Origin: Lepidodermella squamata
Lineage: Eukaryota; Animalia; Gastrotricha
Assembly (NCBI GenBank): GCA_047495785.1
Contig: JBLDXI010000032.1
Location: 434,001 to 498,000 of the forward strand
DNA length: 64,000 nt
Direction: 5' to 3'
Shown: in pieces, positions 5,929 through 64,000 of the stretch
Layout: each line of letters begins with the position of its first letter
How positions within the stretch are numbered: the stretch's first letter is position 1
The notes under the pieces: generated by a model
Seen by the model: the letters and a program-made list of their open reading frames with translations, nothing else
Databases searched by the model: none
What the model was told of the DNA's origin: nothing
Program-made: the position numbers and the translations under genes

Positions 5929-6675
5929 TCGCATATAAATATAAATTAGTTGGTACAGTAGGTATTGAGGCTAGGATTTAGAGCTCGAATAAATAATTTT
6001 TCGGTACGTAGTAAACGATATGTTAACAATGATGTAGAATTTGTGTAGTGAACGGTGGATCAGATTTTGTACAAGTTCATTTTACAAGTTATTCCTACAT
6101 GCGCATAGTAAAATTTAGCCATTGGGAAATTGAATTTATGTATGGTTGAATAAAAAATTTCCGGAGATGGAATTGTTATTTCAATTTTTTACGCTATTTT
6201 AACTGTGGTATGACCCTTTAACACTCCAAAAAGTCGCTCCAGATTATGCGCATATACTATAGAGGCTCATTACACTTTGATATAAGATGAATCATATTAT
6301 AATGTTTTTTCTGTTGACTTTTTTTGCCTTCGCTACGCTGCTCTTCGAGAAAATACGAGGATTATACATCATTACTAGTATAACTACTAGCATACTAGTT
6401 ATTCTGCGCGTTTTTCTCTCCGGTAGTTTACTGCGATGAAGCTAGCTTTCGGAGGAGCACCCCGGCTCTTTGGGGAACTGGCTGGCAGCTTTTTGAAGAC
6501 CTTTTACCAGGTCTTCAATAAGCCGCTTTTCCAGGTTTTCCCAAGGGTGCTCAGGTGCCCCTTTTTAAAGCTAGTTTTATCAAAGTGTTTTCATTTATCA
6601 AAGTCTAGGGTATAGCCATAATAGAGTATTCCCTTAATACCTACTGTACCAACTAATTTATATTTATATATGCGA
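5929..6675. mobile_element. Non-autonomous DNA element with about 42-bp terminal inverted repeats
   Basis: tcgcatataaatataaattagttggtacagtaggtattgagg (5929-5970) is a near-perfect inverse of 6632-6675. No clear TSD. Confidence 0.7.
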
Positions 6676-6703
6676 CTGTATTCGTTTTATAGTCATTAAC
6701 ATA

Positions 6704-7034
6704 CCGTACTGCCCGGAACAAAAACCATGAAATTTGGTTTTTTTCAAACGTTGATGAACCTCTAACATTTAAAAGGGACTGACATTTATTTATTCGAGCT
6801 AACTATAGTAACTTGCCTAGGTACCAAAATGGCATACATTTTCCTGAGATTCTACGTATTTTTACCCAAAAAATTGGTCCCTGACCTTTCTATGTGCCAA
6901 GAGTAGAAATTATTTCCATTCAGAATGGCTATAATGATCTCATTAGTGATCTTCAGTACTGTCCCCGCCATTGATCTGACATTTATTTGAGGCTGCCATT
7001 TGTTCGAGGCTGACATTATTTTCGGGCAGTACGG
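6704..7034. mobile_element. Tc1/mariner-superfamily (pogo/Tc2-type) MITE
   Basis: TA|CCGTACTGCCCG ... CGGGCAGTACGG|TA: 12-bp perfect TIR, TA target duplication, internal CTGACATT(T)ATT repeats. Confidence 0.85.
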
Positions 7035-7140
7035 TATATTATATTACCTATTTTTCTATTATTTCTTTAGATTAATTTTTTAAGAATATAGCTGAACACA
7101 CACCCTTTTTCAAAAACTGTATTATCGGGCTCTTATTAGA

Positions 7141-8096
7141 ATGGATAACTATTCGATAGATTCACTTCGACAAGCGCTTCAGACCTACAAAAATGAGAGT
7201 TGGAGCACTATTCGTGAGCTTGAAAGCATTAGTCGTTTCGTGCAAAATTCCCACAAAGGTTCCAATATTGTGAAAACTGTTGGAACCAGCGCTGGCGTAG
7301 CGGGCACCGTGGCGACTGCCGGACTCCTCTTTGCGCCTCTAACGTTTGGTCTTTCTGCCATTGCAGCCGGGGTAGCAGTTGGCGGGGCAGCTGGCAGCAT
7401 TGCTGCTACTGTCTTATGCGCATTTGGTGATAGCCATGATGGCAAAATCGCCATAAGAAGAATCGAAAAAGCTCAGAGTGCTCATCAGCGAAGTGTCAGT
7501 AAGCTGAACGAAGAACTGGAGAAGTGGAATGAACTAGTGAGCCACTTGCAAAGATCTTGTGAAATTGATACCGATGCAGCTCTATTCAGCGTGATTGCTT
7601 TCATTTTCGACACGGGTAAGAAAGTTTACAATTTGACGAGTCTCGCCAGCCAAGTGTCAAATGCTGTAAAAGTCGGCAATATCACGAAGATTTTGCAAGC
7701 GAACAAAGTCGGTCTCCAAATTGGCAAATCGATCACCGGCAAAGGAATCTCGGTATCTTTTCATCCTGAAGTAATGGGCTTACTGTCACCAGCTCAACAA
7801 CAAATGCTTATTAGGACACCTGAAAAAATTATGAGCGGGAGCGGTTTGTCCTTCCTTGCCAAGGGCATGTTTGTTGTGAGCATAGACAATAATACTATTA
7901 TAATGTATTATTGTCTATGGTTGTGAGTGTCTGCTTCACTGTTGGCGACGTTTATTCTCTGGTCAAGTCGTGGAAGTCCAAGCACCCGTTATTCGCTCCT
8001 ATCGATACGTTCATTGATGACATAAAACGCTCAATTGAATCAACTGACGCTATGATCAAATTGATCGACCACATGAACAGCTCGATAAAAAAATGA
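7141..8096 (+). CDS. Apolipoprotein L-like protein (two coding segments, junction near 7876-7927 unresolved)
   Basis: ApoL-type hairpin HKGSNIVKTVGTSAGVAG...GLLFAPLTFGLS...GAAGSI, a coiled coil, and C-terminal DVYSLVKSW followed by an amphipathic helix. Confidence 0.75.
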
Positions 8097-9496: not shown

Positions 9497-12271
9497 TTAG
9501 GCAAGTTCAGCTTGTTGAACGAGTTGTTGCGACAGCGAAGGCAATGACGGCATTAGATTCAAAAAAGCTGAGGATAAAAGCGAGTTCGTGTTGTTATTAT
9601 TGCTCGATGACGATGAGCTGCTCGTCGAACTGACTGTCGACGAAGCGCCGGATGCTGCTTGATTGCTGTTGTTGCTGGTGGCGATCTGCTGCACCTGCGC
9701 CATGAATGTTTCGAGTTCATCGGCGGCTTTTGTTAGAAACGAGGCTGATTCTCGATAGCCGGCGATTAGTGAACGAACCCGGCCGACGTCGCCGCCAGCT
9801 CCGAAGCGAGGCGCCATGGCGTTGAGAAGCGATGAGGTGGCTACGCCAGGGGGCGGCATAGAGAGGAGAGGCGTGGGTGGCACCGGCAGATTGCGAACCG
9901 ACAGGTCGAGAGCACCGGCACCGAGTTGAGTCGCCACTGGGGTTCCTAAAAAATGGACAAATCAAAAATTAATATGAGGCTAATTAAATTTGAAAGCTCA
10001 TTAGAACATAAAAATTCCAGGAAAATCCTAAACTAAATAGTCTAAGAATTCCAAGAAATGAGATTTTGTACTTCAAAAGCTAGGCTAAGGTAGGAAATTA
10101 TCAGGATTACTCAATAATATGACTAGTATAGCGTAGGAGGTTTGGGTCTTCAACACCCCAAGAGAAATCCTGAAACAAGGTCACCAAGTGCCTAATTGCT
10201 TAATTTTTGGCACTTCGTCTACCTCAACCAATCGAAAGACAGCCCGAAATAATTCACGTCTACTACGCCTATGCTAATAATAGGAAATTATTGGTGAGTA
10301 CAAATCTTAGAATAAACGATTTTTTAGAAATCCCATCGAAAATAAAGAAATCGATTAATTTCAAGGGAATCAATCTGAAAGCAGAACGAACTTCGACCAG
10401 AAGGGGAAAAATCTTTGAACAATTCATTCGCCGAAAAATGCTTTTCCGTTATTTCCGGCAATGCCATGATAAATTTAAAAAATCCAATTTTCAGTGTAAG
10501 GTCATCACTCAGATCACCGCTTCGAGAACACAAAATTTAACAAAACCTGGAAATATTTCAACAATCTCAAGTTCCAAGCATTTTTAGACATTTTTCATGG
10601 TAACAACCTAAAATTGTTGCTCGCTTAAGCTCGCTAACCATTTTTCCTATTTCCTTCGTGTGAAATCTCGAAATATGCCATCATGCAAAAAAATAGTCAT
10701 AAATCAGCTAAAAATCTAGACATTTTATAATGGTTCCCTGGAAGTCGCGCAAGTTTTGCAGCCATGATTCCATTCTTTTCGAATTAAAGATTTTGCTGAC
10801 TAATTTGAAGTAGGGCGCCATGCAAATTTGTTCAATCTTGTAAAATTCGTTTAGAAATATTCGGGAATCTTCCAAAATGATTCTCCCTTATCCTGCATTA
10901 TTCGGATAAGTCTCAGATTTTTCGTCAGACGACTACAATGTGTAAAAAAATTGAAGACACTCATAATCCTAACCCTTTCAATGTCTAGTATTTCGCTCGC
11001 TAATATAACAGGTTTATAAGGAATAAAACTGACCTGAACCGAGTCGATCCTGGTTCTGGAAAGCAGTGAGAAAATTTGCACCCCCAAATAGCTGACTCAT
11101 AAAATTCGCCGCCGCAGCCGCTTGTTGCTGTTGCGTGAGCTGTTGCTGGTTCTGCTGCTGCTGCTGTGGTTGCGGCGACGGCTGAGGCATGCCGCCGACC
11201 TGTTGGTTAGGCGAGGCGCGAGACTGACGCGGCAGAACAGCTTTCCGCTGCCTTGGCCGCCGCATCTGCGTCAAATGATGCGGCTGATGCATTTTCAACA
11301 GGTGATGATGGGCGCCGTTCGCCAACGGGTGACGCGCATAGCCGCTGCCCGGCATGTTCTGATCGCCGCTGATGGCCGGCGATGACCGGTAGCGCTTCGC
11401 ATCAGGCTCAACAGACCCGTCGACGTTCACCTCATCAGTTTCACCATCGATCATATCGTCGTTGTTGCAAACAGCGACGAGAGGAGACGATGAAGGCAGA
11501 TGATCATCACCAGCCATCATGTGACCGTTGTGACCGCCATTTCCGGAAACAGTCGACGAAGCGCCTGGCGTCTCGGCAGCACTTGGAGACCCCTGAAAAT
11601 CAGAAAAAAATTGTTACAAAAAATTAAAAAATCCAGCTTAATTTTAAAATATTATTATCGAATTATTCTAAGCCTATTTAAGGTACCAAAGATGAGGCTA
11701 AATCGTAGCGCTGCTTAAAGCGATGAAGCCAGCCGGTCGAAGCGCCAAAGCCTTGAACCCCAAGCCTGGCCGCGATTTCGGTCGCTTTTCGCCTGATCAT
11801 TTCCGGTCTCGGTAAAGCACCGCCATTCAACACGCGACCATCAGTTTTAATCCAGCGAACGAGCTCTTCCTCAACCTGTTCGAACTGGCCGGCTCGAAGT
11901 CGCTTGCGTGATGTCGGAACACCGTTCATTGTCAAAGCGCGTTTTATGATGAACTTCTTACGGCGGAGTGTCATCGATAGGGTTGTTGAGCTGAGGCCGG
12001 GAAATCGGCGTAAAATAACCGATCGCGGTAGTTTTTCCGCTTCGACCATTCCAATCCATCGCAGTTTATCTTCAATGCTCCACTGTTTGCGAGAAGCAAC
12101 TCCACTTCCGCCGCCGTGGCCACCAGTCGACGACGAGTGGGGAGAGGGCGCGGTTCCGATATTACTGCAGTGATTCACATCAGAAAGGGGCGAGTCGACT
12201 GTTATTTCGCTCGAACTGCCATGTTCGCTTCCGTTTTGACTGTGGTTATCTTGCTTTACTTTAAGCGCCAT
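9497..12271 (-). CDS. Isoform B: CENP-B/pogo (Tigger/jerky-type) double HTH plus the same shared tail; exons 12271-11687, 11592-11034, 9945-9497 (530 aa predicted)
   Basis: RKQWSIEDKL...STTLS..LR and RKRLR...VEEELVRWI...IRRKATEIA..LG...F.ASTGWLHRFKQRY are CENP-B N-terminal and HTH_Tnp_Tc5-type motifs. No DDE domain follows. A weak donor TTG|gtacct at 11686 is phase 0 and gives a 94-nt intron to the acceptor at 11593. Confidence 0.72.
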
Positions 12272-15077
12272 GTTATTTTTAAAAGATAACGCTTGATAGT
12301 AGAAACGAAAGCCATGACTTTTTTCATTTTCAAGGTTACAAAAATAACCATATTTGTCGGTGGTTTTTCAGGGGTAATGATGCAAGTTGAGTCACATGTT
12401 GCTGTAACGCAGCGTTAAATTTATTTAAACGCGAAAACAAGCAGTTGAACTAAGCTAGCGCTTTTAGCTAAAAATAGCGTAAATTGGGTTATCAAACATT
12501 ATACTACTGCACGATGTTGAAATTATCGCGCTACAATACCGGCGCTGAGTCAAACGAGTAACGAGTGCGCGCGCTCACGTGAAAGCTTCAATAGAGGTGG
12601 CGTGTTTTTTTGGCAGCATCAAAAGCCCCCGTGAAAGAGATTGGTCACCACATACCGACATTTTTCACCATTAATAGCTCGGCTATTGAAAACATAAGAA
12701 GTTTATAGATCCGCCTTAAAAAATCGCAGTGGCGGGTAGAATAAGAGCAGCTGAAAGTTGATTAGATGTGTCAGGTCTGCACCGACGAGGTTGGCGTCAA
12801 ATCGCCGATTTCAGCTAAAAATAAAGTGAGCAGTCCCAAGCCGCGAAGCATGGAAAGTTGATATCTGCACGTGCAAGCTATTCATTTCTAAGAAAAATGA
12901 AGCAGCCAGCTAGTAATAAAGACATGTGAAGGTGTTTTATTACGCAGGGGTCTTCTAACGGCTAGTTTTTATGACACTGTAGCTCGGGTAAAAAGTGCGA
13001 CACCGAAATTAATAAGCGAGAGCGTCTTGTAAAGAAATCAAGTGTTGGTAAACAAGATTTCAGGAATGGCTGTTATTTCGAAAATAGAAGCAGTTATAGC
13101 TGGCAATTTTTACGATCGTTTACCTACTACGACTACTACATGACGTTAACGGAAACGCATAAAACTTGAGCGCAATAAATGTTGGCGCGTTCGCTTTGTA
13201 GATGCCGCGCATTTATGGCACCGCGTGTGCATTGACTGTAAGCGGAAGTCGAGCAGAGAACTGTTTTATTAATTAAGGCGCGATAATCAAGTCGCATCGC
13301 GCGCGGGCTTTTCACGGAAATTGCGCCTGATTCGCGGGATTTTTATGCGAATAACTCGTAACTGTCTGTTGAGAGAAAATTTATTATAACGCATAGTAAA
13401 TAAATTTATTGGCGGGCAATAATAATCGCATAACGGCTAGGTAGTTTATAGCAAGTAGCGTGTAGTGCACCTTGCCTTCTTCACGCTGGCTGGGCCGAGG
13501 GAACCTGGTTGGCCGCGCGAGAGAGGTCGCACCCATCGCAAGTTGTACCGCATACTAATAATATAACGCAGGGCGCACTTTTTGAGAACAAAAGAGGTGC
13601 GAGTTTCGTTGCGCGCATCTACATCTCGCCCGAGACATCTTTTCCACATTAATCACACGCGACAATGATGTCTCATTACAAGATGATGATGATGAGTGCA
13701 TAAATCAGCGCATCTTTTATCAAATTTAAGGTAGATATGAAAGGCTTCGCAAAAAAGGAAGTTGTTTTGCGAATCCTCACAAAACATTGGCATTGCATAC
13801 TACGATGAATTTATTTCCTGACGTGGGCTCTTTTGTTATTATTGTATTATCGCCTTACCTCAAGCGTTATTATCTTTTTTAACCGCAGTAATTTTGCGGA
13901 TGGCGTTTTTTTTACGAAATTTAGCGCCGTCTTGATCTATTTTCGTACACGTGAGCGCGTTATAATGAGTGCCGTGGCATCATCTGTCATTGTAGCGAGA
14001 AAAACATGCGAAGGCGAGATGTGGAAAAAAAAACGCCCAGGTAATCGAATTCGCCTCAGCGCCATCACCTTTCGCTTCGGAATAGCGCATGCTACGTGCA
14101 TCCGAGCGTAGATTATTTCATTAAAGTGTTAAATTCAATAAAAAAACGCAACCGTATCGCAATGTAATATGATTCGTTTTGTTACAGCTTTGCACCGAAT
14201 GTCGAGATATATCTAGAAAAATGCAGTCATCCTGACCGGACATCCAACTTCAAGACAAACGTGTAACAGTTATCGAAATTGTCACGAAGTCACACAAGAA
14301 AAATGACCGAAATCTGTCGAAAAAGTGTGACAAACGCACAGCGCCTACGACAGTAGGGCGAACTAAAAAACGATCAATCGTCCTTTTCGAGGTGATTAAT
14401 TATAACTCGCAAATACTTATCAGTATCTATGTAGTTTCGTTAATTAAGAAAAAAACGGAACTTACTTCGTAATTATCACCTGACCGCCGAAGGTCTTCAT
14501 GGACATGCGGCTTCATGTCGTCGCCAATTGAATAAGGAGAATCGATCATGTTCTTGCCATCAGGCAACAAAGACCAGCGGGTCGATGGAGGTCCTGATCC
14601 CTGCTGGTTCTCTTCGCCGTTGTTGTTGTTGTTGTTGTTGTTGTTAGCGTTGTGGTTGTTATTTTTCATAGACAAGTTTGCAGGCGATGCAGCGCTCATT
14701 TTCGCAATCATCGAATTAGGCGTTGTAGGTTCCGCCTTCAAAGCCCGCAAGTCATCGGTCGACAAATTGTGGAGCGGGAAAGCTGGGAACATGGCTTGAA
14801 CGTTATCGGCCGGGAAGTTGAACAGCGACGGCACGGCGGTTCGTTTCAAGACACGCCGGCCGTCTTTATGAACGACAAAATTATCGAGTTCAAAATGCTC
14901 GGAACAGATTCGGAGATTTCGCGACAACGGGTAATTTGTCACGCCAATCTTGGCGACCCAGCTTTGAAGCAGGTTTAGATCGGAAACCGGGAGACGGTGG
15001 AAAGACACTCCGCGGCTTCGGCAATCCTCACGATCAGGTCGGTTCTGGCAGCCCCAGACCATGCAGCAGTAAACCAT
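9497..15077 (-). CDS. Isoform A: THAP zinc finger plus shared NOL4-like corepressor tail; exons 15077-14466, 11592-11034, 9945-9497 (539 aa predicted)
   Basis: Complete THAP domain (MVYCCMVWGC..FHRLP..W..RICSEHF..LK..AVPSLF). Donor GAA|gtaagt (phase 0), acceptor ttttcag|GGG at 11593 (phase 0), donor CAG|gtcagt and acceptor ttttag|GA (phase 1) are all in frame. The tail has ALDLS and VRSLIAGYRESASFLTKAADELE. Confidence 0.8.
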
Positions 15078-17783
15078 TTTTTTTACAAAGTATTAACACA
15101 GCTATTAATTAAAAAGAGATAAAAAATTAAGGCGACCATTTCTCGGTGCATAGTGTTATTGAGATGGTAACTTTTCAGTACCATTTATGCGCGAGTTTTT
15201 TGCGTCTTTGACGCATCGCGCTGCTAAGCAACTTTGAAAAGTTGAAACTGCTGGCGTCTATGAGCGAATGAATGGCGATCGTGGCGCCCCTCCTTTGAAA
15301 AAGTGCCATCATCACCATCATAGTCATAGTCATAATCGGGTGCACGCATTAGCGCCGCCGCAATTCAGGCTACGGTGCTGCACCTAATCCGGTGTGAGAA
15401 GAAAGGCGTGCCCGAGAGGCCCCGCGCGCCCGTTATGAAAAGACCGCGTACAGTGGTGGCCAGCCAAAGTTCACTCGCGATGGATGGGACAGGATGCGCC
15501 CTGTGTCTGTTACACAAAACGTGTGTCGACGATGGCGAACGGCGATAAAGGTAATTCATCAGATTTAGCAACTCGAGCGCCCGGGTGCTATATAACAATA
15601 ATAACACAACTAAACGCGAAGTAATAATAGGACTAATCTCTTAAAAGCGCCTATTATTATTATGTTATTTCCAGCATGGCTTTGGGCGTTTGAAGTTTAG
15701 GGAACGCACGTACCGGGCTTAAATGAAACGAAAACAATTCACGCTGAGGCTTCCATTGCACCTTGCGAGGCTCGCGACGAAGGTGGTGGTAATGATGCGA
15801 CAGCGGCGGTGGCGGGTTTAGGGCCCACGATACGATGGAACGCGCGCACGCTTCTCAAAATATTGCAATACGGCAGCCCCTGCTGCTAAATAACTGTACG
15901 GCAGTACTAAAATTATTGTCAACCAACCAAACCAACGGTCGGCAACAAGCGAGCGAGCGAGCGGGAGGAGGTGGCCAGGTCTGGGTTGGCTTTGCTCGGC
16001 CACATTACTGCGAAAATAATTACACACCAGGCAGCCGCCGAGCGAGAGGAGACAAGCAATAAACGCGCGTGTGTTTTCTGCAGCGCCAGAGTGGCTGTCG
16101 TGGTCTTCTTTATTAATGGGCACCGAGAGCGCGGGATGAGCCCGCACCACACGACCAGCACGTGGCAGTGGCGAAAAAACCATAATAAACGACGCGTTCT
16201 TTTTTAATGACCCCCTCGTGCAGCAGTCGACAGGCGCCCTAGAAATTATAAAAACAAACACGGTTCTGCCGGGTTGTTTTATGCGCAGCGAAAAAAAATG
16301 ACAGAAAAAACGATATTTAAGGAGGACTTTTCATTTTAATACCGGAAATTTATTGCAGAAACAGAACATGGCAGTGGAACTAGTACCTCGTCGATTAACG
16401 ACTTCAGCAATCCTCACGGCCCGTTAAAACTGACGATAATGAGCCAAGGCATGTTTTGAATGAATATTGTCGTTCAATAAAGCCGCCGCCGCCAGGCCTG
16501 GTTCGCGTGGTGACCTGCAGTGCGTTTGTTGCTGTTCGACGTGGGTATTACTGCGTAGCCCACCAATACGCACGACGCGACTGGCGGCGGCGGTGGCAAT
16601 AAACCAGTCCCTTTGCGAAAATTATTATTTGAAGCTAGGTAGGTATAGATGATATGTGCGCGCAATCTCCAATGGGTACATCTCTCGCTGAATTTCTGCC
16701 GGCTACCGCGCGGTGTCGTTGTGGCCAATCCTCTTAACATCGCCACGTTATGCTTAACCCCAAACAAGGAGCCGCGCTTTGGTTGTATTGCGCGCCGCCG
16801 ACCTGCAATGATATGACGATGATGATGATGATGATGACGAAGTACAATTCGGGTGGGTTTTTGCCGTGTAGAAAGCATAACAATCAATTTCGCAATATGA
16901 TTCTAAAAACCGGCGCGATTTCCCACCGAGCGCGGCTGGTTGATGCTCCATTAAGTTATGTAGCCAGTCTGGCACCGCTGGGAAAAAAAGCGTCGAGTAG
17001 AGGATGAGTAAAGTGCGCGGGGTTTGAATTTTTAATGGGCAAGCGAGTAAAAAGCTTCCGCGCACTACTACCATCACCTCACCTCCACGATTGTGACGGA
17101 TCTCAGGGCGTCGGCGCATCAGCATTAGCAGGCGCAGTGCTCGCTTTTTTGTATAGGCAAACAATAAATAGCACGAAAAATACGTGAATAGAAAATGCGA
17201 ATATAGCAGCTTATACCAGCTGCGGTGTTGTTCGGTATCACGGAGAGGTCTTCACTTTAGGCCGATAGATTATAGCCGCTCCGGAACGTGGCAAAACTGA
17301 CAAATAATGATCAAAATGGCAATAAAACAAAAATTAAAACTTAGCGCCTCCAAATTTCCAATTTTTTAAACAGAAAAAAGCCTCGCAATAAAGGATGACT
17401 TGCGATAATGCAACGGTTTTGTCTGAATTGGAATCCCGCTCTTTTGAGTTTTCATTTTCGTTTTACCTAAAAATACCGTAAGCTGGCCTAATTTCGGACA
17501 AAAACGTGTTTTTCGGGCTTCGTTTTGTGAGGTTAACGAATTTCTTTACACGCTTTATGTCAAAAGATGCGCCTTGAAAAACTGCATAGTCTAGCATCAA
17601 CTCCGGTAAACAAATAATTTTCCCTGTACAGGTATTGAAGGAAAACTGATCCGGCTAATTTCGGACACAACTGGAGTAATTTCGGACAGCTCAGTGTGAA
17701 TATTTAGATTGGGGCCAAAGTTCACATTAAAGCGAGATAAAATTTGTGAGCAGATTAAAAGTAAAAAAAATAAAAAAATAAAA

Positions 17784-55076: not shown

Positions 55077-58000
55077 TTAGTTGTCTTGCCACTGCTGAAT
55101 TAAAAAAACAGCAATTAAAGAATAATGCAATTTGATGGATCAAATGTCATACCTGATCGACCGATCGGCCCAAATCGAACATCATATTGTTTTGCTGTTG
55201 AGGCTGAGGCACCCTACCCGACATGTGGGATGGCATGCCCATGCCATAGCGACCGAGGGCATCAGCTGCGTTCAAATCGAAGGGCGACTGCATCCCGCCG
55301 AGCCCTGAGCCGTCGCCCGACCACATTGGCGGCTGTTGCTGCGGCGGAACCTGCTGCTGCTGGTCCATTCCGTAGCCGGGTTCCGGCATTTGATGCGGCG
55401 GCGGCATTTGCGGCATCGGACGACCCCGCGACATGGCGAAGAAATCCGCCATTTTATTCGATCCAGCGGTTGAGTCGACGAACTTCATCGGAGATGGCAT
55501 AGCCGGCCCGGCGAAATCAGGCGGCGGCGGCATGCCAGGCCCAAACGGAGGCATGAAGCCCGGCGCACCTGGTGCGATGAAATCGCCGAGTTTAGACCGT
55601 TGCGGCTGTGGCGGTTGTTGTTGTTGTTGCTGTTGTTGTTGTTGGAAGTGGCGAGCCGCGTTGAACTGGTTCTGCTGTTGCTGAGCGAAGTGCGACTGGT
55701 CCATTGAATTCGGACCGGGCTGCTGCTGTTGCGGCGGAGGTGGTGGCACGCGGCCGTACGGGCCCATTTGCTGCGTCGGCGGCGGCGCCATTTGCTGAGC
55801 AAACCACGGCGGAATTCGATTGTTTTGGTTCATATCGTTGTTTTGAACGGGCGCAGATTGCGCTGGCATTTGAAAGTGGGACGGCATTTGAGGCGGTTGT
55901 GGCTGGCTAGGCTGTTGCTGCTGATGAGGAGCCTGCTGCTGCTGCTGTTGTTGCTGTTGCTGCATCATACGTTGCTGGTTAGCCATACCAGTCAATTGAC
56001 TCAATTGATTCAAAGCAGCCTGTAAAACACAAGAATAAAGAATACGTTAAAAAATGTCAATATTCAAAAATTCCACCTTAAAATATCAGAAAAACCGAAA
56101 TTTTACCTGAGAAATGTTCAAATTGCTCAGTTGTTGCTGTTGATGCTGCTGTTGCTGTTGCTGATGTTGTTGTTGTTGCTGCTGCTGTTGCTGTTGTTGC
56201 TGTTGTTGTTGCTGGCGTAGCATAGCAGGTAGGCTATTTGTGGGCGCAACAGCCTGGTTCATCGAGTTCGAATCATTGCGGGTCGATGGCGTGAAAACCG
56301 GCACGTCCGGATTCAGCGCCGAGTCAATTTTCGGCAAACCGAGCGCCATCGAGACGTCGCTCATCGCCGAGTTGACGACCGGCTTGCTCGCCGAACCAAA
56401 CGCGGCCAACTGCTGCATTTGATGCAGACCAGCCAACTGCGGCGGCATCATCGGCGGCAACTGGTTTCGCGACGGTGTCGACGGCAGAATCAACGGCGTC
56501 GAGCCAGACGCAGCGGAGGGCGGCGGGGTGGCCGGCGATAGCGAATTGGCACTCTGCCCGGGTTGAGGCGGGCTGATGTGCTGCCTGGGTTGTTGATTGA
56601 AATGGCCGTTACCGTTATTGCTGCCCACCATACTGTTCGAAGCACTCAACATCGCCGCAGCGATTTCGGTCAACTGTTGCTGCGACACGTGATCGGCGCG
56701 ATGCGGGTCGTACGGGCCGTTCTGCGAGAAATTCTGGTCGTAATCGCCCGGTTGCAACGCCTTACCCGGCGAGTTTTGCGCCTGTTGTTGCTGCTGCTGC
56801 AGAACATACGCCAACTGATTGACCTGTTGTTGTTGACGACCAGCAGCCACAGTTGCGAAATCATTGCTAGCATTCGCCTGGTTTTGCGCTTGTTGCTGCT
56901 GTTGGCGTTGCTGCGACGTGAAAAGGGACGTTCCGACCAGGTTCGGCGGTCCGCCGAATAAACTGAACCCGCTCGAGGCAAGACCGCTGGAGAACAGCGA
57001 GTACTCCTGAGCAGCTTGTTGCTGTTGCTGGGTCAGCGTTTGCTGGTTCTGCAGTTGTTGCTGTAATTGCTGTTGTTGTTGCTGAGACTGTTGCGCTTCG
57101 TACTGTTGTTGAATCAACGGCGAAACCTGTTGTTGCTGCATCTGGTTTTGGCTGTTCGACGCAACCACCGCAACTTGAGCTTGTTGCTTCGTTGGGATAT
57201 CGATATTTCTCGGCGAAACTAGCGGCTCGCCCGGGGACGCGTTCGACCCACTGGATCCGACTGAAACGACCGACGTAGCAGAAATCGAAGCGTTCGGCCC
57301 TTGATTCTGCCCTGACCCAGTAATAGACTGTTGTTGCTGGAACAGGGGTCGAATGCCGGTTCCGCCGGTTGAATTCGACGCGGCTGTTGTAGTTGAGGTC
57401 GCAGCCGAAGTGCCGCCACTCGCTGCTTTCGATGCGACGGAAACGTAGTCCAAAGCTGGTTTATCGCCAAAATGAGGTGCAGCCGTCGACGGGGTGGTAG
57501 CCGCAGACCCGGACGACCCGCCCGAGACAACGGAGGCAAAGGCCAAAGGTCGATTAGCATTCGAAGCCGTTTGAGCCGCCTGCTGGGTCGAATTAGCATT
57601 CGGTTTCGATCCCTGTTGCTGCTGAGTTGTCTGGTTAGTCGTCGCCGTGGCGTTAGTCGTGGCCGGGGCAGGCTGAGCCGGCGGTTGGGCCGGTGGTTCA
57701 CTCTGCCCGGTCGCCTTCAAATAGTCCGGATACTTCGCAGCTAACCCGGTGACGTCAATACCCGGCTCTTCGATAACCGACCGAATCAAATACTCAGCCA
57801 TCGCCATTTGTTGCGGCGTGCCTTTCAAAGTGGCGATATGGTCGTTCGTATCATCGCTGATCCGATCGACTTGAACACTCGAGCCGGAGAGGTCGCGAAT
57901 CTTCTTGATATTAGCACCCTGGCGGCCGATCAGTCGACTCACAACATGAGCGGGCACAACAATTTTCGGATTGATAGGCACTTTACCCGAAGTTTGACTG

Positions 58001-61000
58001 CGTTTAACCTCTCGCCAGCCGACAGTCTCTTGCTGAGCAGTGGCGTCTTTAACCGGAGTTCTGCCGGGTGATTTCGACGAAGTAGTACTGGTAATAACAG
58101 CAGCGGCCGCTGAAATAGTCGGCAAAACCTTGCCAACCGGCTTGCTGTTCGGAGTAGTCGGGTTGGTCTGGACCTGCCCGGTTTTCTGGGCCGAGTTGAC
58201 TTGACTTGAGACGCCCGATTGATTGGTAGACGAGGAAGATGCTACAACCGCTGGAACGGTTGGGGTCGATGATGTTGACGTAGTCGTGACTGTCGCGCGG
58301 GTCGAAGTCGCCGATGCAGACGACCGCGATTCGTTCTGACCCGATTTCGGCTGCAGAAGAGGAGGTGGGAAGTTGTTGGATTGTTGAGGCGGAGGTGGCG
58401 AGGACCGCTTCGCCATCTCCTTCTGAGGTTGCTTCGCCGGTTGCTGCTGCTTCTGAAAAAACTTAAAAATAAAAATCCAGCTTAAAATTAAATTTGCGTT
58501 ACTAACCTGTTTTCCGCCCTTTTTCGCCTGCTGCTTCGAAGTTTTGCCATTAGCCGGCGCTTCTTCGATCAGAACTTCCTCGACTAGCTCGATCTCCTGG
58601 ACAGGAACGCGATTCGACGCCTGGCCCCTGGACTGGTGGCTGTTTTGAGGCGGAACTCGGCTTGTGGTAGCGACTTGAACGGGCGCAACCACCTCGGGCT
58701 GGTCGTCATCGGCCAGACTCGACGCCTCGCTCGACTCGGACGAAGCCCGTTGCTTCGCGGCATTGTTCTTCGCCGTAATTTCAAGCTCTCGCAACTTCTG
58801 CTGGACCTCTTTCGTCGACTGAGTCGACCTCTCAGGCGATCGATCATCTTCGCTGTAGGACTGAGTGTCGGGGGTGTCGCGGCCTGTCTTTTGCGACGTG
58901 GCAGCGACCGCCTTGGCCGGGCCCTTTTGCTTGTCCTTTTTCCGCTTACGCTTCTCGCGTTTCTTCGCCTGTTTCGCTTCCTCGCGCTTTTTCTCAATTT
59001 CAATAATTTCAAGCAGCTGTTTTGCATTTCGTGACGCTTCAAGCGCCTGCTGCTCCTTAGCCTGGCCGATAATTTCAAGGCACTTGCGGCAGTTGTTGAG
59101 GAGTTCCTGATCAGTCAACGTGGTCATATAACGCTCACACTCCTGGTCCGACGGGAACTGTTTGACGTAGTTGACGAGGTAATTCACGACCTTGACGTGG
59201 CCTCGCCTGAACGCGGCCATCAGGCATGAAATCTTGCGATTGTCATCAGAATTCACATCGGCATCAGCCGCCACGAGCAGTTTCACAACGTCGAGATGGC
59301 CGCCGTTGCAAGCCAACCACAGAGGCGAACATCCCTTCTTGTTCTTCACATCAACCAGCGTGCCGTGTTCGAGCAGCAGCTGCACGAATAGGGCGTGGCC
59401 TTTATCGGCAGCGATGTTGAGGGTCGTATCGCGCGACAACGGGACAGGCTGAGCGTTCACCTCAGCGTCGTGAGCGATCAAGATCTTCCCGACCTCGACA
59501 TAACCGCCAGAAGCGGCTTCCATGAGAGGGGTGAGGCCGGTCTTGGCACGATGTTCGATGTTAGCGCCATGCTCAAGGAGCAATTGAACGACTTCATGAC
59601 GACCCTAAATTACAAAATATTGAAAATAATATTTTTAAGGAGGATTTTTTATTTACCTGGAAGCAAGCAAGAGTTAAGGCTGTGTTGCGGTTGGTTTCGA
59701 TTTGCGCGTTCACGTCACAACGATTTTCGAGTAGCATTTTAACGGCTGCAGTGTGGCCGTTCATCGACGCCAACATAAGGGGCGAAATGCCGAGTTTGCT
59801 ACCCGTTCGCGAGTTGATTTCAGCGCCGTGGTCCAGCAGCAGCTTGATAATCTGGCAAAAGCCGCCCGAAGCTGCCAAACTCAACGGCGTGTAGTCGGAG
59901 ACGTTGCGATGCTCTTTATTCGCGCCGTATTCGAGGAGGAGTTGAACAACCTCGAAGCGGCCGCCTGAGCAGGCGAGGGATAGAGCTGTGTCTTTCGTCC
60001 GCTCAGCCTCGGCTTCGATTTTGGCGCCGTGGTCGAGAAGAAGTTTACACACGTTCGTATGACCAGCCATAGCCGCGAGAATTAACGGGGTGAAGCCTTT
60101 TTTATCGCGATGTTCGATATCGGCACCGTTGTCGATCAGGTACTTGACCAGATCCACGTAACCACCAGCACATGCCAGAGTTAGAGCGGTGTCGTGATTC
60201 GACTCAGTCTGCGCGTTCAGGTCGATTAGCGGGGGCGGACAGGCTTGCAGGGTCTGGGCAGCAGCTGCGGCGGCTGCGGCTGCAACGGCGGCAGCAGCGG
60301 CCGGCGAAGCAACCCTGGTGTTATTCGGCTGTTCTGGCGGTAGGGCGACATTAGGCGAGGCGAGGGCGACCGCGTCGATATCTGACGTTTGGTCGTTATT
60401 CGGTAGAGTTTGCGGAGGTTGGGTGGTGGACGACGCTTTCGGCCGCCGCAACAACGCAGCCATTCGCTCTTTCAACACGCGACCCTCCGGGCATTGCGCC
60501 GCTTCTTCGATGAATTTCGACAGTAACTCCGGGTTCTGCTCGGATTTGAAGTACTTTTCGAGGATCGAAGGCAAATCGGCGAGATTTGCGTGCGGGTGCC
60601 GGGGACAGCCGGCGTGCGACGAGGTTTGAGGTTGCAGCTGCTGCTGTGACGAAGACGATTTCGCTGATTTGGCCGGTTTGCTGTTGCTTGCGGTGCTGGA
60701 ACTCGCCGATGTTACCGACGACTCGGACGAATTTGACGTCGAGGTGGTGGTGGTAGACGAAGTCGAGGTTGCACTGACACTGACACTCGTTGTAGTGACA
60801 TTGATGGTATGTGTCACCTGAGTGCTCGATGCAGGCGGGGTAGGCGGTGGAGCGGCGATTGCCGGTACTACCGGCGGCGGTTGGATAGCGACCGGAAGCG
60901 GGGCTTGAAGGGCTCCGCTTGGTAACGATGTGGCCGGTATCAGAGTCGCGGTGGTGGGTGTAGTGCCAGGTGGCACGCCCGTGGGCGGATTTCCCACGAT

Positions 61001-64000
61001 GCCGAGGACGACTTGCTGGTTGTTCTGCGAACCGATCAGCAAATGCTGCCCGGTGTGCGTCACGCCGATGTAGAGAGGCTGGTTCGATTCGACCACCGTC
61101 GAATTACCGCCAGAGGTCGTCAGTAGCAATCCCTGTAAAAATTCAGAAAAAATATATTATAACACCCAGCTTAATAATGTTGAGATATTTAACATCTTTT
61201 CATTTTTCCTGGTTTTGCTCAGAGCAAATATCATTTAAGACTCAAATAAAAGAGCGTCTTCAAAATTTCGGCCAACTATAGCGCCGTTGCACAAAGCGTA
61301 AATAAATTGTTTACTGTAATGCGATTATTTCAGTATCCATGTCCTGAATAATTGGGTCAAAATTTAAAATCTTACCTGAGAATAGAAGGGGTGCTGTTTT
61401 TTGAGGTCTTCGTCGGAAATAGAGCCTTTCCGGCTCGAGCTGTCCGAGTCGCCGCCTTGCGAGGACGAATCCGCGCCGGGTGGAGGCGACAGGAAGAGTT
61501 GCGGCGGTGGGACGACTCCCACGGTTTCGCCACCCGCCGTCGCTTGCGTGGAGCTAAATTGCAATTGGAAGGTGGTAGTCGTTGCGATAGGCATAATGAC
61601 GGCCTGGGTTGCCGCCGCGTTGGCACCGCCGGGGTACGATACGATGGCAGCGAGTTGTTGCTGCTGCGCCGGGTCGATCGGAGTAACGACGTTTTCCAAC
61701 GAAATAGGCACGGTTTCACCACCAGGCTGCGCCAGGTCCAACCGCAAGGCACCCCACATTGCCGGGTCGACGGCAGACGATAGAGGCACGATGGGAAGTT
61801 GAGGCGGTACCGGCGGAGGTGGAGGCGCAGGAGGCGGGGTCGATGTCGAGGTCTTATTCGGTTGTGGCGCACCGCCAGTTCTTTTCGCGGTCTGCTTCTT
61901 TTGATCAACCGAAGGCGCTGGCATGGGAGGCAACGGAGGCGGTGGTAGAGTTGGCACGAAAGGTGTTTCAATACCCTCTTGTTGTTGTTGCAACTGTTGC
62001 TGGGCCGCTAAGCCAGCCATCCCCTCCGGGTAGCTGTAAAGCAACTCAACAATCTTCATATGACCACCCTTAGCCGCCTCGATTATCATCGTCGAACCGT
62101 CCTTCAGCTTGAAAGTCGGGTCAGCTCCATGGCTCAAAAGAGTCTTCACCACCTCGTAATGACCGCCATAACATGCGATTGAAAGGACGTTATGTTCACC
62201 GTTAGATGTAGTCCGGTTCACGGAAGCCCCCTTAGCAATCAACATACGCACGGTTTGCACATGTCCCGCTCGAGCAGCCTTCATCAACGGAGTCCGGCCG
62301 CCCTCGGATTCGTGCTCGATCTCAGCACCATGCGCCAATAATAACTCCGCAACGCTAGTATGGCCATTCTCGCACGCCATCGTGAAAGCCGTGTCGTTGT
62401 TCACCGACTTGGCGTTGACATTTGCCTTCATTTTCAGTAGATACCTCACGATTTCTTCATGACCCTCTTGACTCGCTTCCATTAGCGGGGTCGACGGGCC
62501 TAGTTCGATATTAGCGCCGGCTTCAATCAACGTTTCAACAACGTCGAGATAACCGGAGCCACATGCGAGTGTTAAGGCGGTTTCTTGCGTCTCCTCAGCT
62601 TGCGCGTTGACATTCGCGCCATGCTCCAGTAACAGCTTCACCATATCGACATGGCCCTCTCGAGCCGCTTCCATCAAAGGCATGTAACCTTCGTCGTTAG
62701 CTTCGTCGACATTTGCGTTGCGCTCGAGGAGCAGTTTGGCTAGTTCGATGTGGGCACCACAGGCAGCGAGGGTTAAAGGCGATTCGAAGCTATCAGGCGG
62801 CATGTTGACTTGCGCACCTCGATCGATTAGAAGCCGCGCCACGTCGGTGTGGCCGTCCATGGAAGCTTCCATCAGAGCCGTATGCAATTCTTCGGCTCGA
62901 TGCTCAGGGTCGGCACCGCCAACGTCTAAAAGATACCGCACAACTTCGATGTGGCCTTTGTAGGCCGCGAGGGTGAGGGCACTTTCTTTGTAGTCGTCGG
63001 AATGAGCGTTGACGCCCGCTCCGGCTTCCACAAGCGCTCGGCATAGCGATAAATGACCAGCGCCCGCAGCATCCATCAATGGAGTGTGGCCGCTTTCATT
63101 CTGCTTCTCTAAATCGGCACCAGCTTCGATAAGAGCCTTCACAATGCCCTCATGACCCGCTTTAGCCGCTATGTGAAGCGCGGTATCACCATTTAGAGTT
63201 TGAAGATTCGGATTTGCGAGGTGCTGAAGTAGAAGGCGAACGATTTCTTCATGGCCACCACTAGCGGCAGCCATTAGAGGAGTAAGGTCACCTTTGGCTC
63301 CTCGGTCATCCACAGGTTGCCTCATGTCAAGTAATACCTGAAAATGAAAAAATGATGACTGCTTCGATTCAACATTGGTGACTAAACGCTTACATGAACA
63401 AGCTCATAACAACCTGCGGAACTTGCGAGGACGAGGAGAGAGTCGCTTTCTTCATGCGGACCTTGGCACTCAAGAAATGTTCTCAAAGCATTGAGGTCGC
63501 TTTCAGCTGCCTCGGGAAAACAGTTATCATGATTATGCGCTTCGGCATCAGAGGCGAGGGCTGTAGCGTTAGCCTGATCAATCATCTGCTGGAAGCAATT
63601 TAGGAAACTCTCGGCAGGAACACTATCGATGGCTATAAAATAGGTAAACCAATCGCTAGATGTTGAAAGCGATGTAGAATAGTTTGACATACCTTTCATC
63701 GCCAGCATTTCACCTAATCGCGTAGGATTCGGCAGAAGCTGGGGAATGACATAATGAACACTATCCGACGAGTCGCCCCTTTCGCTGTTTGTCTAAAAAC
63801 GAAAAAAAATATGATTGAGCACCTTAAAAGCGCCAAGATTCATGAATCTTACACCAACAGCAGCACAATCTGAAAAATTCGAGTCAGCAGGGCGCTTGCG
63901 ACTATCGCGAGAAACGGATTTAGGCTGCAGTGTGCCTTCACTATTACGAAAAACTTTAACACGTTTAGCCAATGCTTTCTTTCCGGCTTCTTCGGCTGCA
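55077..64000 (-). CDS. ANKHD1: Ankyrin repeat and KH domain protein (MASK/ANKHD1/ANKRD17); the 5' end probably lies beyond the window
   Basis: Two ankyrin blocks (TPLMEAAREGH; TESNHDTALTLAC, RNVSDYTPLSLAASGG, RAKTGLTPLMEAASGG), a basic coiled coil, a KH domain (VSRLIGRQGANIKKIR) and a Q/P-rich tail. The last micro-exon QWQDN* ends at 55077. Confidence 0.96.

Follow-up and report, generated by a model that had tools for sequence, protein, structure and literature searches.

Can a single gene direct one effector to two unrelated sets of DNA sites by exchanging the DNA-binding domain at the N-terminus of its product? This question is raised by a locus of the gastrotrich Lepidodermella squamata, which lies on the minus strand between positions 15077 and 9497 of a stretch of 64,000 nucleotides (contig JBLDXI010000032.1 of assembly GCA_047495785.1, positions 434,001 to 498,000), hereafter called the window, to which all coordinates refer unless another contig is named. 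A first-pass annotation of the window had interpreted the locus as a gene in which either an exon encoding a THAP finger or an exon encoding a CENP-B/pogo-type double helix-turn-helix (HTH) is spliced to one shared tail. Our analysis supports this interpretation, and we consider it likely that the locus represents one gene, whose two alternative first coding exons exclude each other and are spliced to the same two-exon tail, and that this gene acts by the mechanism proposed below.

The anatomy of the gene was determined by direct reading of the minus strand of positions 15400-9300. The alternative first coding exon A, which encodes the THAP finger, extends from its ATG at 15077 (aaaaATGG) to position 14466 (612 nucleotides, 204 codons) and terminates in phase 0 at a GTAAGT donor. 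The alternative first coding exon B, which encodes the CENP-B/pogo-type double HTH, covers positions 12271-11687 (585 nucleotides, 195 codons), starts with its own ATG at 12271 (taacATGG) and likewise terminates in phase 0, here at the weak donor GTACCT; without splicing, its open reading frame (ORF) reaches a stop three codons further on. The sole strong acceptor downstream of exon B is the sequence ttttcAG with the AG at 11594-11593, so that the shared exon 3 begins at 11592. Exon 3 (11592-11034) ends in phase 1 at a GTCAGT donor and is followed by the shared last coding exon 4 (9945-9497) with the TAA stop codon at 9499-9497. All introns are of the GT..AG type: the intron of the THAP isoform (14465-11593, 2873 nucleotides) harbors exon B, the intron of the HTH isoform (11686-11593) has a length of 94 nucleotides, and exons 3 and 4 are separated by an intron of 1088 nucleotides (11033-9946). 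Scripted joining of the exons yields open spliced frames of 539 amino acids (exons A-3-4) and 530 amino acids (exons B-3-4), respectively, and these products differ solely in their DNA-binding head.

In addition, a lone AG acceptor is located just upstream of each start codon. The first one (15103-15102) follows a T-rich tract and precedes the ATG of exon A by 24 nucleotides, and is a candidate acceptor of a spliced leader or of a 5′-untranslated region. The second one (12293-12292) precedes the ATG of exon B by 20 nucleotides and is a candidate spliced-leader acceptor. Joining exon A in cis to the latter site results in a stop at the 12th codon, in line with the first-pass annotation, which had placed this stop within 12 codons of an acceptor at about 12292. 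Its exon coordinates, start codons, donors, phases and single acceptor could all be confirmed as well. Searches of the introns revealed neither a transposase remnant in their ORFs nor terminal repeats nor a match to an Rfam family.

Evidence for the two isoforms at the level of RNA was obtained from a public sequencing run (X1), which is labelled only "RNA?", consists of contigs and matches the exons of the window with an identity of approximately 98-99%. The depth of its contigs, which is a poor measure of quantity, ranges from about 10 to 43 over the four exons and from 0 to 5.6 over the introns. The joint 11034^9945 between the shared exons is found in the X1 contigs on exactly the predicted bases at a depth of 31. 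Likewise, the joint 11687^11592 of the HTH isoform, which skips the intron of 94 nucleotides, falls on exactly the predicted bases at a depth of 8.6, with 35 letters on its shorter side, indicating that the weak GTACCT donor is used. The joint 14466^11592 of the THAP isoform is present at a depth of 23.6; it is listed as 11589->14465 with the letters "GC" in between, which corresponds to the joint 11592^14466 together with a synonymous G-to-C change at 11590 (coding strand). All three joints are bordered by GT and AG. In a second run (X2), cover extends over introns as well as exons, and none of the three joints is present; we therefore regard X2 as DNA, while X1 behaves as cDNA.

Taken together, both alternative junctions exist as RNA, and at both of them a domain of the transposase type is spliced onto host exons. 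The sum of the depths of the two head joints (23.6 and 8.6) is close to the value of about 31 of the shared joint, which is consistent with, though only suggestive of, two main isoforms. A joint between exon A and the AG preceding exon B was not among the joints of X1 and X2. Exclusive use of the two heads is thus supported by both the stop that results from this join and its absence from the listed joints. The first-pass annotation had predicted that both heads are spliced to the one acceptor, and had named as evidence to the contrary that only one junction is found and the GTACCT donor is not used. Instead, both joints are present, and the donor is kept as GTACTT in a second species described below.

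Some further features of the locus emerged from the two runs. Within the long intron that separates exon A from exon B, positions 12892-13085 show low cDNA-like cover (depth about 5.6, three short contigs); this segment contains neither an Rfam family nor a notable inverted repeat, and the cover could reflect a non-coding 5′ exon of the HTH isoform, pre-mRNA or noise. At position 11172, in the glutamine-rich part of exon 3, the contigs of both X1 and X2 diverge from the sequence of the window, pointing to an allele whose repeat tract is different or carries an indel. In exon B, a second haplotype of X2 at positions 11723-11903 differs by about 5% (9 changes in 181 nucleotides, all synonymous) at approximately half the depth, and the same changes are present in X1.

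Both heads can be assigned to known families of DNA-binding domains. The product of exon A matches the Pfam family THAP (PF05485) with 59.8 bits (E 4.4e-16, gathering cut-off 23.9) and, in a comparison with sequences of solved structures, aligns to residues 1-81 of human THAP1 (E 3.7e-12). The domain comprises amino acids 1-89 (15077-14811), and its alignment with THAP1 identifies the C2CH ligands C5, C10, C58 and H61 as well as an AVPSLF box. Exon A therefore combines the C2CH ligands, an AVPTIF-type box and a score above the Pfam cut-off, by which the THAP family is defined. The remainder of this exon contains two conserved motifs. The peptide PANLSMK (14684-14664), identified by alignment and present as PHNLSMK in the second species, is a predicted site which we take to be a PxNLSxK variant of the CtBP-binding motif. 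A motif of 26 amino acids, STRWSLLPDGKNMIDSPYSIGDD.KP (14585-14508), shares 25 residues between the two species, and the corresponding block of DNA was found by blastn.

The product of exon B matches the Pfam family HTH_Tnp_Tc5 (PF03221) over amino acids 130-193 with 51.9 bits (E 7.5e-14, gathering cut-off 22.2). Moreover, a phmmer alignment with CENP-B residues 4-129 (1HLV), comprising both HTH motifs, was obtained at E 9.5e-11. Together, the CENP-B and Pfam alignments delimit a double HTH DNA-binding region at amino acids 60-193 of exon B (12094-11693). The first HTH does not match the Pfam family CENP-B_N even at E 10, yet residues 4-60 of 1HLV are aligned to it. Hence, of the three profiles that the first-pass annotation had proposed to run with HMMER, THAP and HTH_Tnp_Tc5 gave matches and CENP-B_N did not. 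Domains of these kinds mediate DNA binding in transposases, THAP in those of the P type and the CENP-B-type HTH in those of pogo/Tigger (PMC10027918). A core of the DDE_1 or P-element transposase type was not matched by Pfam in any exon or intron ORF and terminal inverted repeats are absent, in agreement with the earlier statement that the locus has no catalytic transposase domain.

The second species was found through the tail. All homology searches were performed exon by exon, and a full HMMER search with exon 4 against 1.84 billion representatives returned seven matches. Among them is P0001, a tail ORF located on a metagenome scaffold of 12 kb (L001); the same organism is represented by two further contigs, namely L002 (18 kb out of a contig of 30 kb) and L003. 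A 1905-amino-acid match from Heliothis (P0002) was rejected as a repeat-driven false match. On L001-L003, a THAP ORF, an HTH_Tnp_Tc5 ORF and a tail ORF, confirmed with Pfam, are arranged on one strand in the same order as in the window. The details of the arrangement likewise recur on L001. The THAP exon terminates in phase 0 at GTGAGC, and the HTH exon terminates in phase 0 at GTACTT, an unusual type of donor common to both species. The acceptor ttttcAG opens the tail, the first peptide of which is conserved with the window. The sequence ttttAG is located 8 nucleotides upstream of the ATG of the THAP exon and 14 nucleotides upstream of the other ATG, and joining the THAP exon to the acceptor that precedes the HTH exon leads to a stop at the 6th codon. 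Read-through joins from the first to the second head are thus closed by stops in both species. Upstream ORF scans revealed no further head exons in either of them. The L001 tail consists of a single exon (6255-7187) that lacks the 1088-nucleotide intron of the window, indicating that this intron is lineage-specific and was gained or lost within a conserved gene.

Sequence comparison of the two species points to strong constraint on the heads. The proportion of synonymous differences is saturated, with 0.85 in exon A, 0.78 in exon B and 0.77 in the tail, and the proportion of non-synonymous differences is 0.18, 0.24 and 0.44, respectively. The THAP domain is 96% identical between the species and the HTH region 79%. 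Correspondingly, within the species of the window or close strains of it, the variants of X1 and X2 are all synonymous in exon A (14 of 14) and exon B (9 of 9), and the tail has eight synonymous and two non-synonymous ones. The low non-synonymous proportion at saturated synonymous sites, together with the exclusively synonymous variants of the heads, shows that both head exons are maintained as coding in the stated frames. DNA similarity between the window and the second species is limited to coding blocks, and the flanking genes differ: the window contains ApoL-like, forkhead, P450 and kinase genes, L002 contains EFTUD2, C2-kinase and chromo genes. Of the checks on selection and synteny that the first-pass annotation had suggested, the former thus revealed purifying selection on both heads; the latter revealed that the gene alone is conserved and its neighborhood is not. 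Downstream of the orthologous locus, L002 carries tandem short ORFs with chromo and chromo-shadow domains at positions 14391-17143 (HP1-like).

Beyond this species, the searches were unproductive. Scans of Joint Genome Institute (JGI) metagenomes with alignments of the THAP and HTH exons found nothing, and word-indexed protein searches with the tail, the region of the tail motif and the HTH exon returned ORFs of this metagenomic species only. An annotated protein with the tail or the HTH exon was not present in the collections searched, and the family therefore appears to be undescribed.

What does the common tail contribute? Neither of its exons matches a Pfam family, and conservation is confined to islands. 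In exon 3 these are SP..A.TPGASSTVS, located at the splice junction, AKR[YF]RSS and RRPRQRK, which resembles a nuclear localisation signal; further islands of the tail include GALDLSVRN and the terminal RVRSLI.GYRESA.FL.KAADELETF. The CtBP-binding motif has the consensus PxDLSxK/R. The peptide ALDLSVR (9913-9893), identical in the second species, is a predicted site resembling this motif, and it aligns with PTDLS.K of fragments from the NOL4 family. It is followed by a C-terminal amphipathic helix, RVRSLIAGYRESASFLTKAADELETF..., at positions 9781-9683, which is identified as a NOL4-type module by alignment with the NOL4 family and by the helix in a model of the orthologue. In this AlphaFold model of the orthologous tail (P0008), based on a shallow alignment, the chain is disordered and only a single helix stands out, which spans about 45 residues over the terminal island and has a predicted local distance difference test (pLDDT) score of 93-97. 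The tail is accordingly predicted to be disordered apart from its C-terminal helix. On reading the helix, its hydrophobic residues form a continuous heptad pattern, which fits a coiled coil.

The relation to NOL4 was pursued with the remaining matches of the search with exon 4, the ORFs P0003-P0007, which are short and contain the motif P.DLS.K followed by a stretch of 23 residues. The contig of one of them, L004, was subjected to one Pfam scan and two pairwise comparisons. An ORF located 1.3 kb upstream on the same strand of L004 matches PF23079 (HTH_NOL4_2nd, "Nucleolar protein 4, helical") with E 4.4e-12, and the helix of the window gene aligns with the last exon on L004 at 67% identity over 36 amino acids (E 9e-15). 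A lead from the Atlas likewise pointed to NOL4, and no usable match was obtained when the Atlas was searched with exon 4. PF23079 is absent from the products of all four exons of the window gene, and a pairwise comparison of exon 3 with the NOL4 exon of L004 revealed no similarity. The "NOL4-type tail" of the first-pass annotation therefore applies to the C-terminal helix module; it does not extend to the remainder of the tail. The Logan contig L004 contains, at positions 1160-2933, a compact gene of the NOL4 family with very short introns, the exons of which encode, in this order, the helical domain, a basic patch of the AKRMRL type and the DLS site with the helix. In the tail of the window gene, a basic patch, a DLS site and a helix likewise follow one another in this order.

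Based on these features, we propose that the tail is an effector made of short motifs in a disordered chain, comprising basic patches that resemble nuclear localisation signals, the ALDLSVR site and the NOL4-type helix. It would recruit one common factor, most probably a corepressor, to two distinct sets of target sites in the DNA, and its effect would probably be repressive through a contact of the CtBP type, with the helix serving the binding of partners or dimerisation. NOL4 itself acts as a cofactor in transcription, and its C-terminal coiled coil is conserved (PMC5343783). NOL4 proteins bind the LCoR-family factors Mlr1 and Mlr2, and the same interaction screens yielded CtBP1 and CtBP2 (PMC5343783). 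The splice forms of NOL4 vary at the N-terminus and can either suppress or raise the transactivation by Mlr1 and Mlr2 (PMC5343783).

These properties of NOL4 also allow for a different function of the tail, namely that of an adaptor or dimerisation module resembling NOL4, which is not a repressor as such, which depends for its effect on partners of the LCoR/E93 family and which may pair the isoforms via the helix. The confinement of the NOL4 homology to the helix and the continuous heptad pattern would agree with such an adaptor, as would the opposite effects of NOL4 variants, which lower or raise Mlr activity (PMC5343783), and the deviation of ALDLSVR from the PxDLS consensus. However, ALDLSVR is invariant between species with saturated synonymous sites, it is aligned to PTDLS.K in the NOL4-family fragments, and a second site of the type PxNLSxK is conserved in exon A. 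As judged from these sequences, both sites point to binding of a CtBP-type corepressor, and we regard the adaptor as a possible but somewhat unlikely alternative to the proposed effector.

With regard to the 5′ ends, we propose that each head exon would have its own, because a lone AG acceptor lies just before each ATG in both species. These acceptors probably receive a spliced leader, and an internal promoter or the choice of the acceptor would then decide which isoform is formed. The first-pass annotation had treated the AG at 12293-12292 as a cis acceptor. Its conclusion that such a join encounters a stop was borne out; given the presence of an AG before both ATGs in both species, the site is better read as a leader acceptor.

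The same acceptors would also fit a scheme with a single promoter upstream of exon A, in which a leader trans-spliced to 12293-12292 competes with cis-splicing from the donor of exon A. The cDNA cover of the long intron is close to nil, and hence a separate upstream non-coding exon for exon B is not visible, which is in line with this scheme. In well-studied animals with trans-splicing, however, acceptors are normally spliced in cis when the transcript offers a donor upstream of them, and cis-splicing would here yield an RNA with a premature stop, the joint of which is not listed. We therefore consider the single promoter unlikely; it is in any case a variant of the mechanism and not of the gene model. 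More speculative still, and in our view rather improbable, is a combination in which competition between spliced leader and cis-splicing would swap the DNA-binding domains and the isoforms would pair via the coiled coil, so that homodimers and heterodimers read three types of composite sites. If true, this would also assign a definite role to the poorly understood C-terminus of NOL4, namely that of a regulatory module that can be transferred.

The families of the two heads raise the further possibility of a factor for genome defence, in which the heads would derive from P-type and pogo-type transposases and bind the ends of the respective transposons, and the tail would silence them. THAP and the CENP-B-type HTH are indeed the DNA-binding domains of P and pogo/Tigger transposases (PMC10027918), but the locus contains no transposon remnant, and the extreme conservation of the heads between very distant species argues for stable targets in the host rather than for the fast-changing ends of transposons, which renders genome defence very unlikely. 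Finally, the HTH exon might be a separate or decaying gene, with splicing noise as the source of its joint to exon 3 and the THAP form with the tail as the sole product. This reading, which one might deduce from the weak GTACCT donor, the stop three codons further on in the unspliced ORF and the lowest depth and shortest anchor among the joints, is hardly credible in view of nine synonymous variants out of nine, a domain that is 79% identical across saturated synonymous divergence, the retention of phase 0, of the GTAC.T donor and of the position just 5′ of the shared acceptor in the second species, and a joint that falls on the exact predicted bases.

Several points weigh against the proposed gene and its mechanism. 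The RNA support comes from one run with the label "RNA?", from a strain or close relative that is about 98-99% identical to the window, and it consists of contigs rather than reads, each joint being carried by a single contig; the HTH joint is anchored by just 35 letters on its short side, and X1 has no cover at 15026-15200. Two promoters, the addition of a leader, or a form consisting of the tail only may each be compatible with the joints. In the collections searched, one other species only carries the gene. The residue A of ALDLSVR replaces the usual P of the CtBP consensus. The derivation of the heads from transposases is suggested by their domain family only, and the functional part of the proposal is drawn from sequence and cDNA contigs.

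How does a gene of this kind compare with known systems? Among the nearest ones are the Drosophila genes lola, mod(mdg4), fruitless, broad and tramtrack, each of which gives rise to many isoforms of a transcription factor and in which exclusive exons for DNA-binding domains are likewise joined to a constant effector. In genes of the lola type, the constant part is an N-terminal BTB domain, and the variable exons are located at the 3′ side and encode one class of domain (C2H2 or FLYWCH). In contrast, the locus described here has alternative first exons and a C-terminal constant part, no BTB domain was found by Pfam, and its heads belong to unrelated folds. Vertebrate fusions of host genes and transposases (KRAB or SCAN with a DNA-binding domain, for instance KRABINER) resemble the locus in that a non-catalytic DNA-binding domain of the transposase type is spliced to host effector exons, which yields a sequence-specific regulator. 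In these known fusions, each gene has captured a single domain, which in most cases follows KRAB or SCAN, whereas here two domains of the transposase type alternate on one NOL4-type tail in an invertebrate.

With NOL4/NOL4L, the locus shares a C-terminal module consisting of x-DLS-x-K/R and, about 30-40 amino acids later, the helix ..LI.GYRESA.FL..ADELE.. at the end of the protein, and NOL4 splice forms likewise differ at the N-terminus (PMC5343783). Unlike NOL4, the locus lacks PF23079, and the rest of its tail is dissimilar. The heads resemble those of CENP-B, Jerky, TIGD and THAP1 at the level of sequence (1HLV residues 4-129 and THAP1 residues 1-81, respectively). These proteins, however, are single-headed and possess C-terminal parts of their own, which are a DDE-derived part with a dimerisation domain or a coiled coil with an HCF-1 motif and which are absent from the locus. 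In C. elegans, CTBP-1 is reportedly a fusion of THAP to CtBP, with isoforms that contain or lack the THAP head (Nicholas et al. 2008, as cited in PMC10027918). There, as here, a THAP finger is coupled to the CtBP pathway, for the locus by a predicted motif only. CTBP-1 differs in that THAP is fused to CtBP itself, whereas the locus carries a site resembling the CtBP motif and swaps its head rather than dropping it.

The literature searched, including PMC5343783, describes no THAP or CENP-B-type head on NOL4, and queries combining NOL4 with THAP and NOL4 with CtBP and PXDLS returned nothing relevant. Likewise, a metazoan survey of transposon-derived factors does not mention alternating heads. 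In agreement with this, the first-pass annotation knew of no description with a NOL4-type tail. The reversed polarity, the two heads of unrelated folds and the NOL4-type tail set the locus apart from the nearest systems.

The remainder of the window contains further features. Downstream of it, a convergent ORF on the plus strand (7141-7926) resembles apolipoprotein L (E 5e-7), and a forkhead-domain ORF is located at 345-815 on the same strand (E 9e-29). A tRNA gene was found at 1670-1742 on the plus strand (Rfam RF00005, 67 bits). On the minus strand, positions 56086-63325 form a GC-rich block (51-56% versus about 42% elsewhere) with very long open frames, among them a frame of 1165 amino acids with ankyrin repeats and a KH domain (ANKHD1/MASK-like).

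The loci hitherto known to swap DNA-binding domains exchange one class of domain, and most known cases of captured transposase domains are vertebrate genes with a single fusion. In the locus of L. squamata, two unrelated folds of the transposase type alternate in an invertebrate gene; both isoforms are present in cDNA, and both heads have been subject to strong purifying selection over the very deep divergence of the two species. The locus thereby offers a natural test of the independence of an effector module from its DNA-binding head, and a case in which to study how an exon nested within an intron obtains its own 5′ end. Moreover, it links the uncharacterised C-terminal helix of NOL4 to sequence-specific DNA binding.

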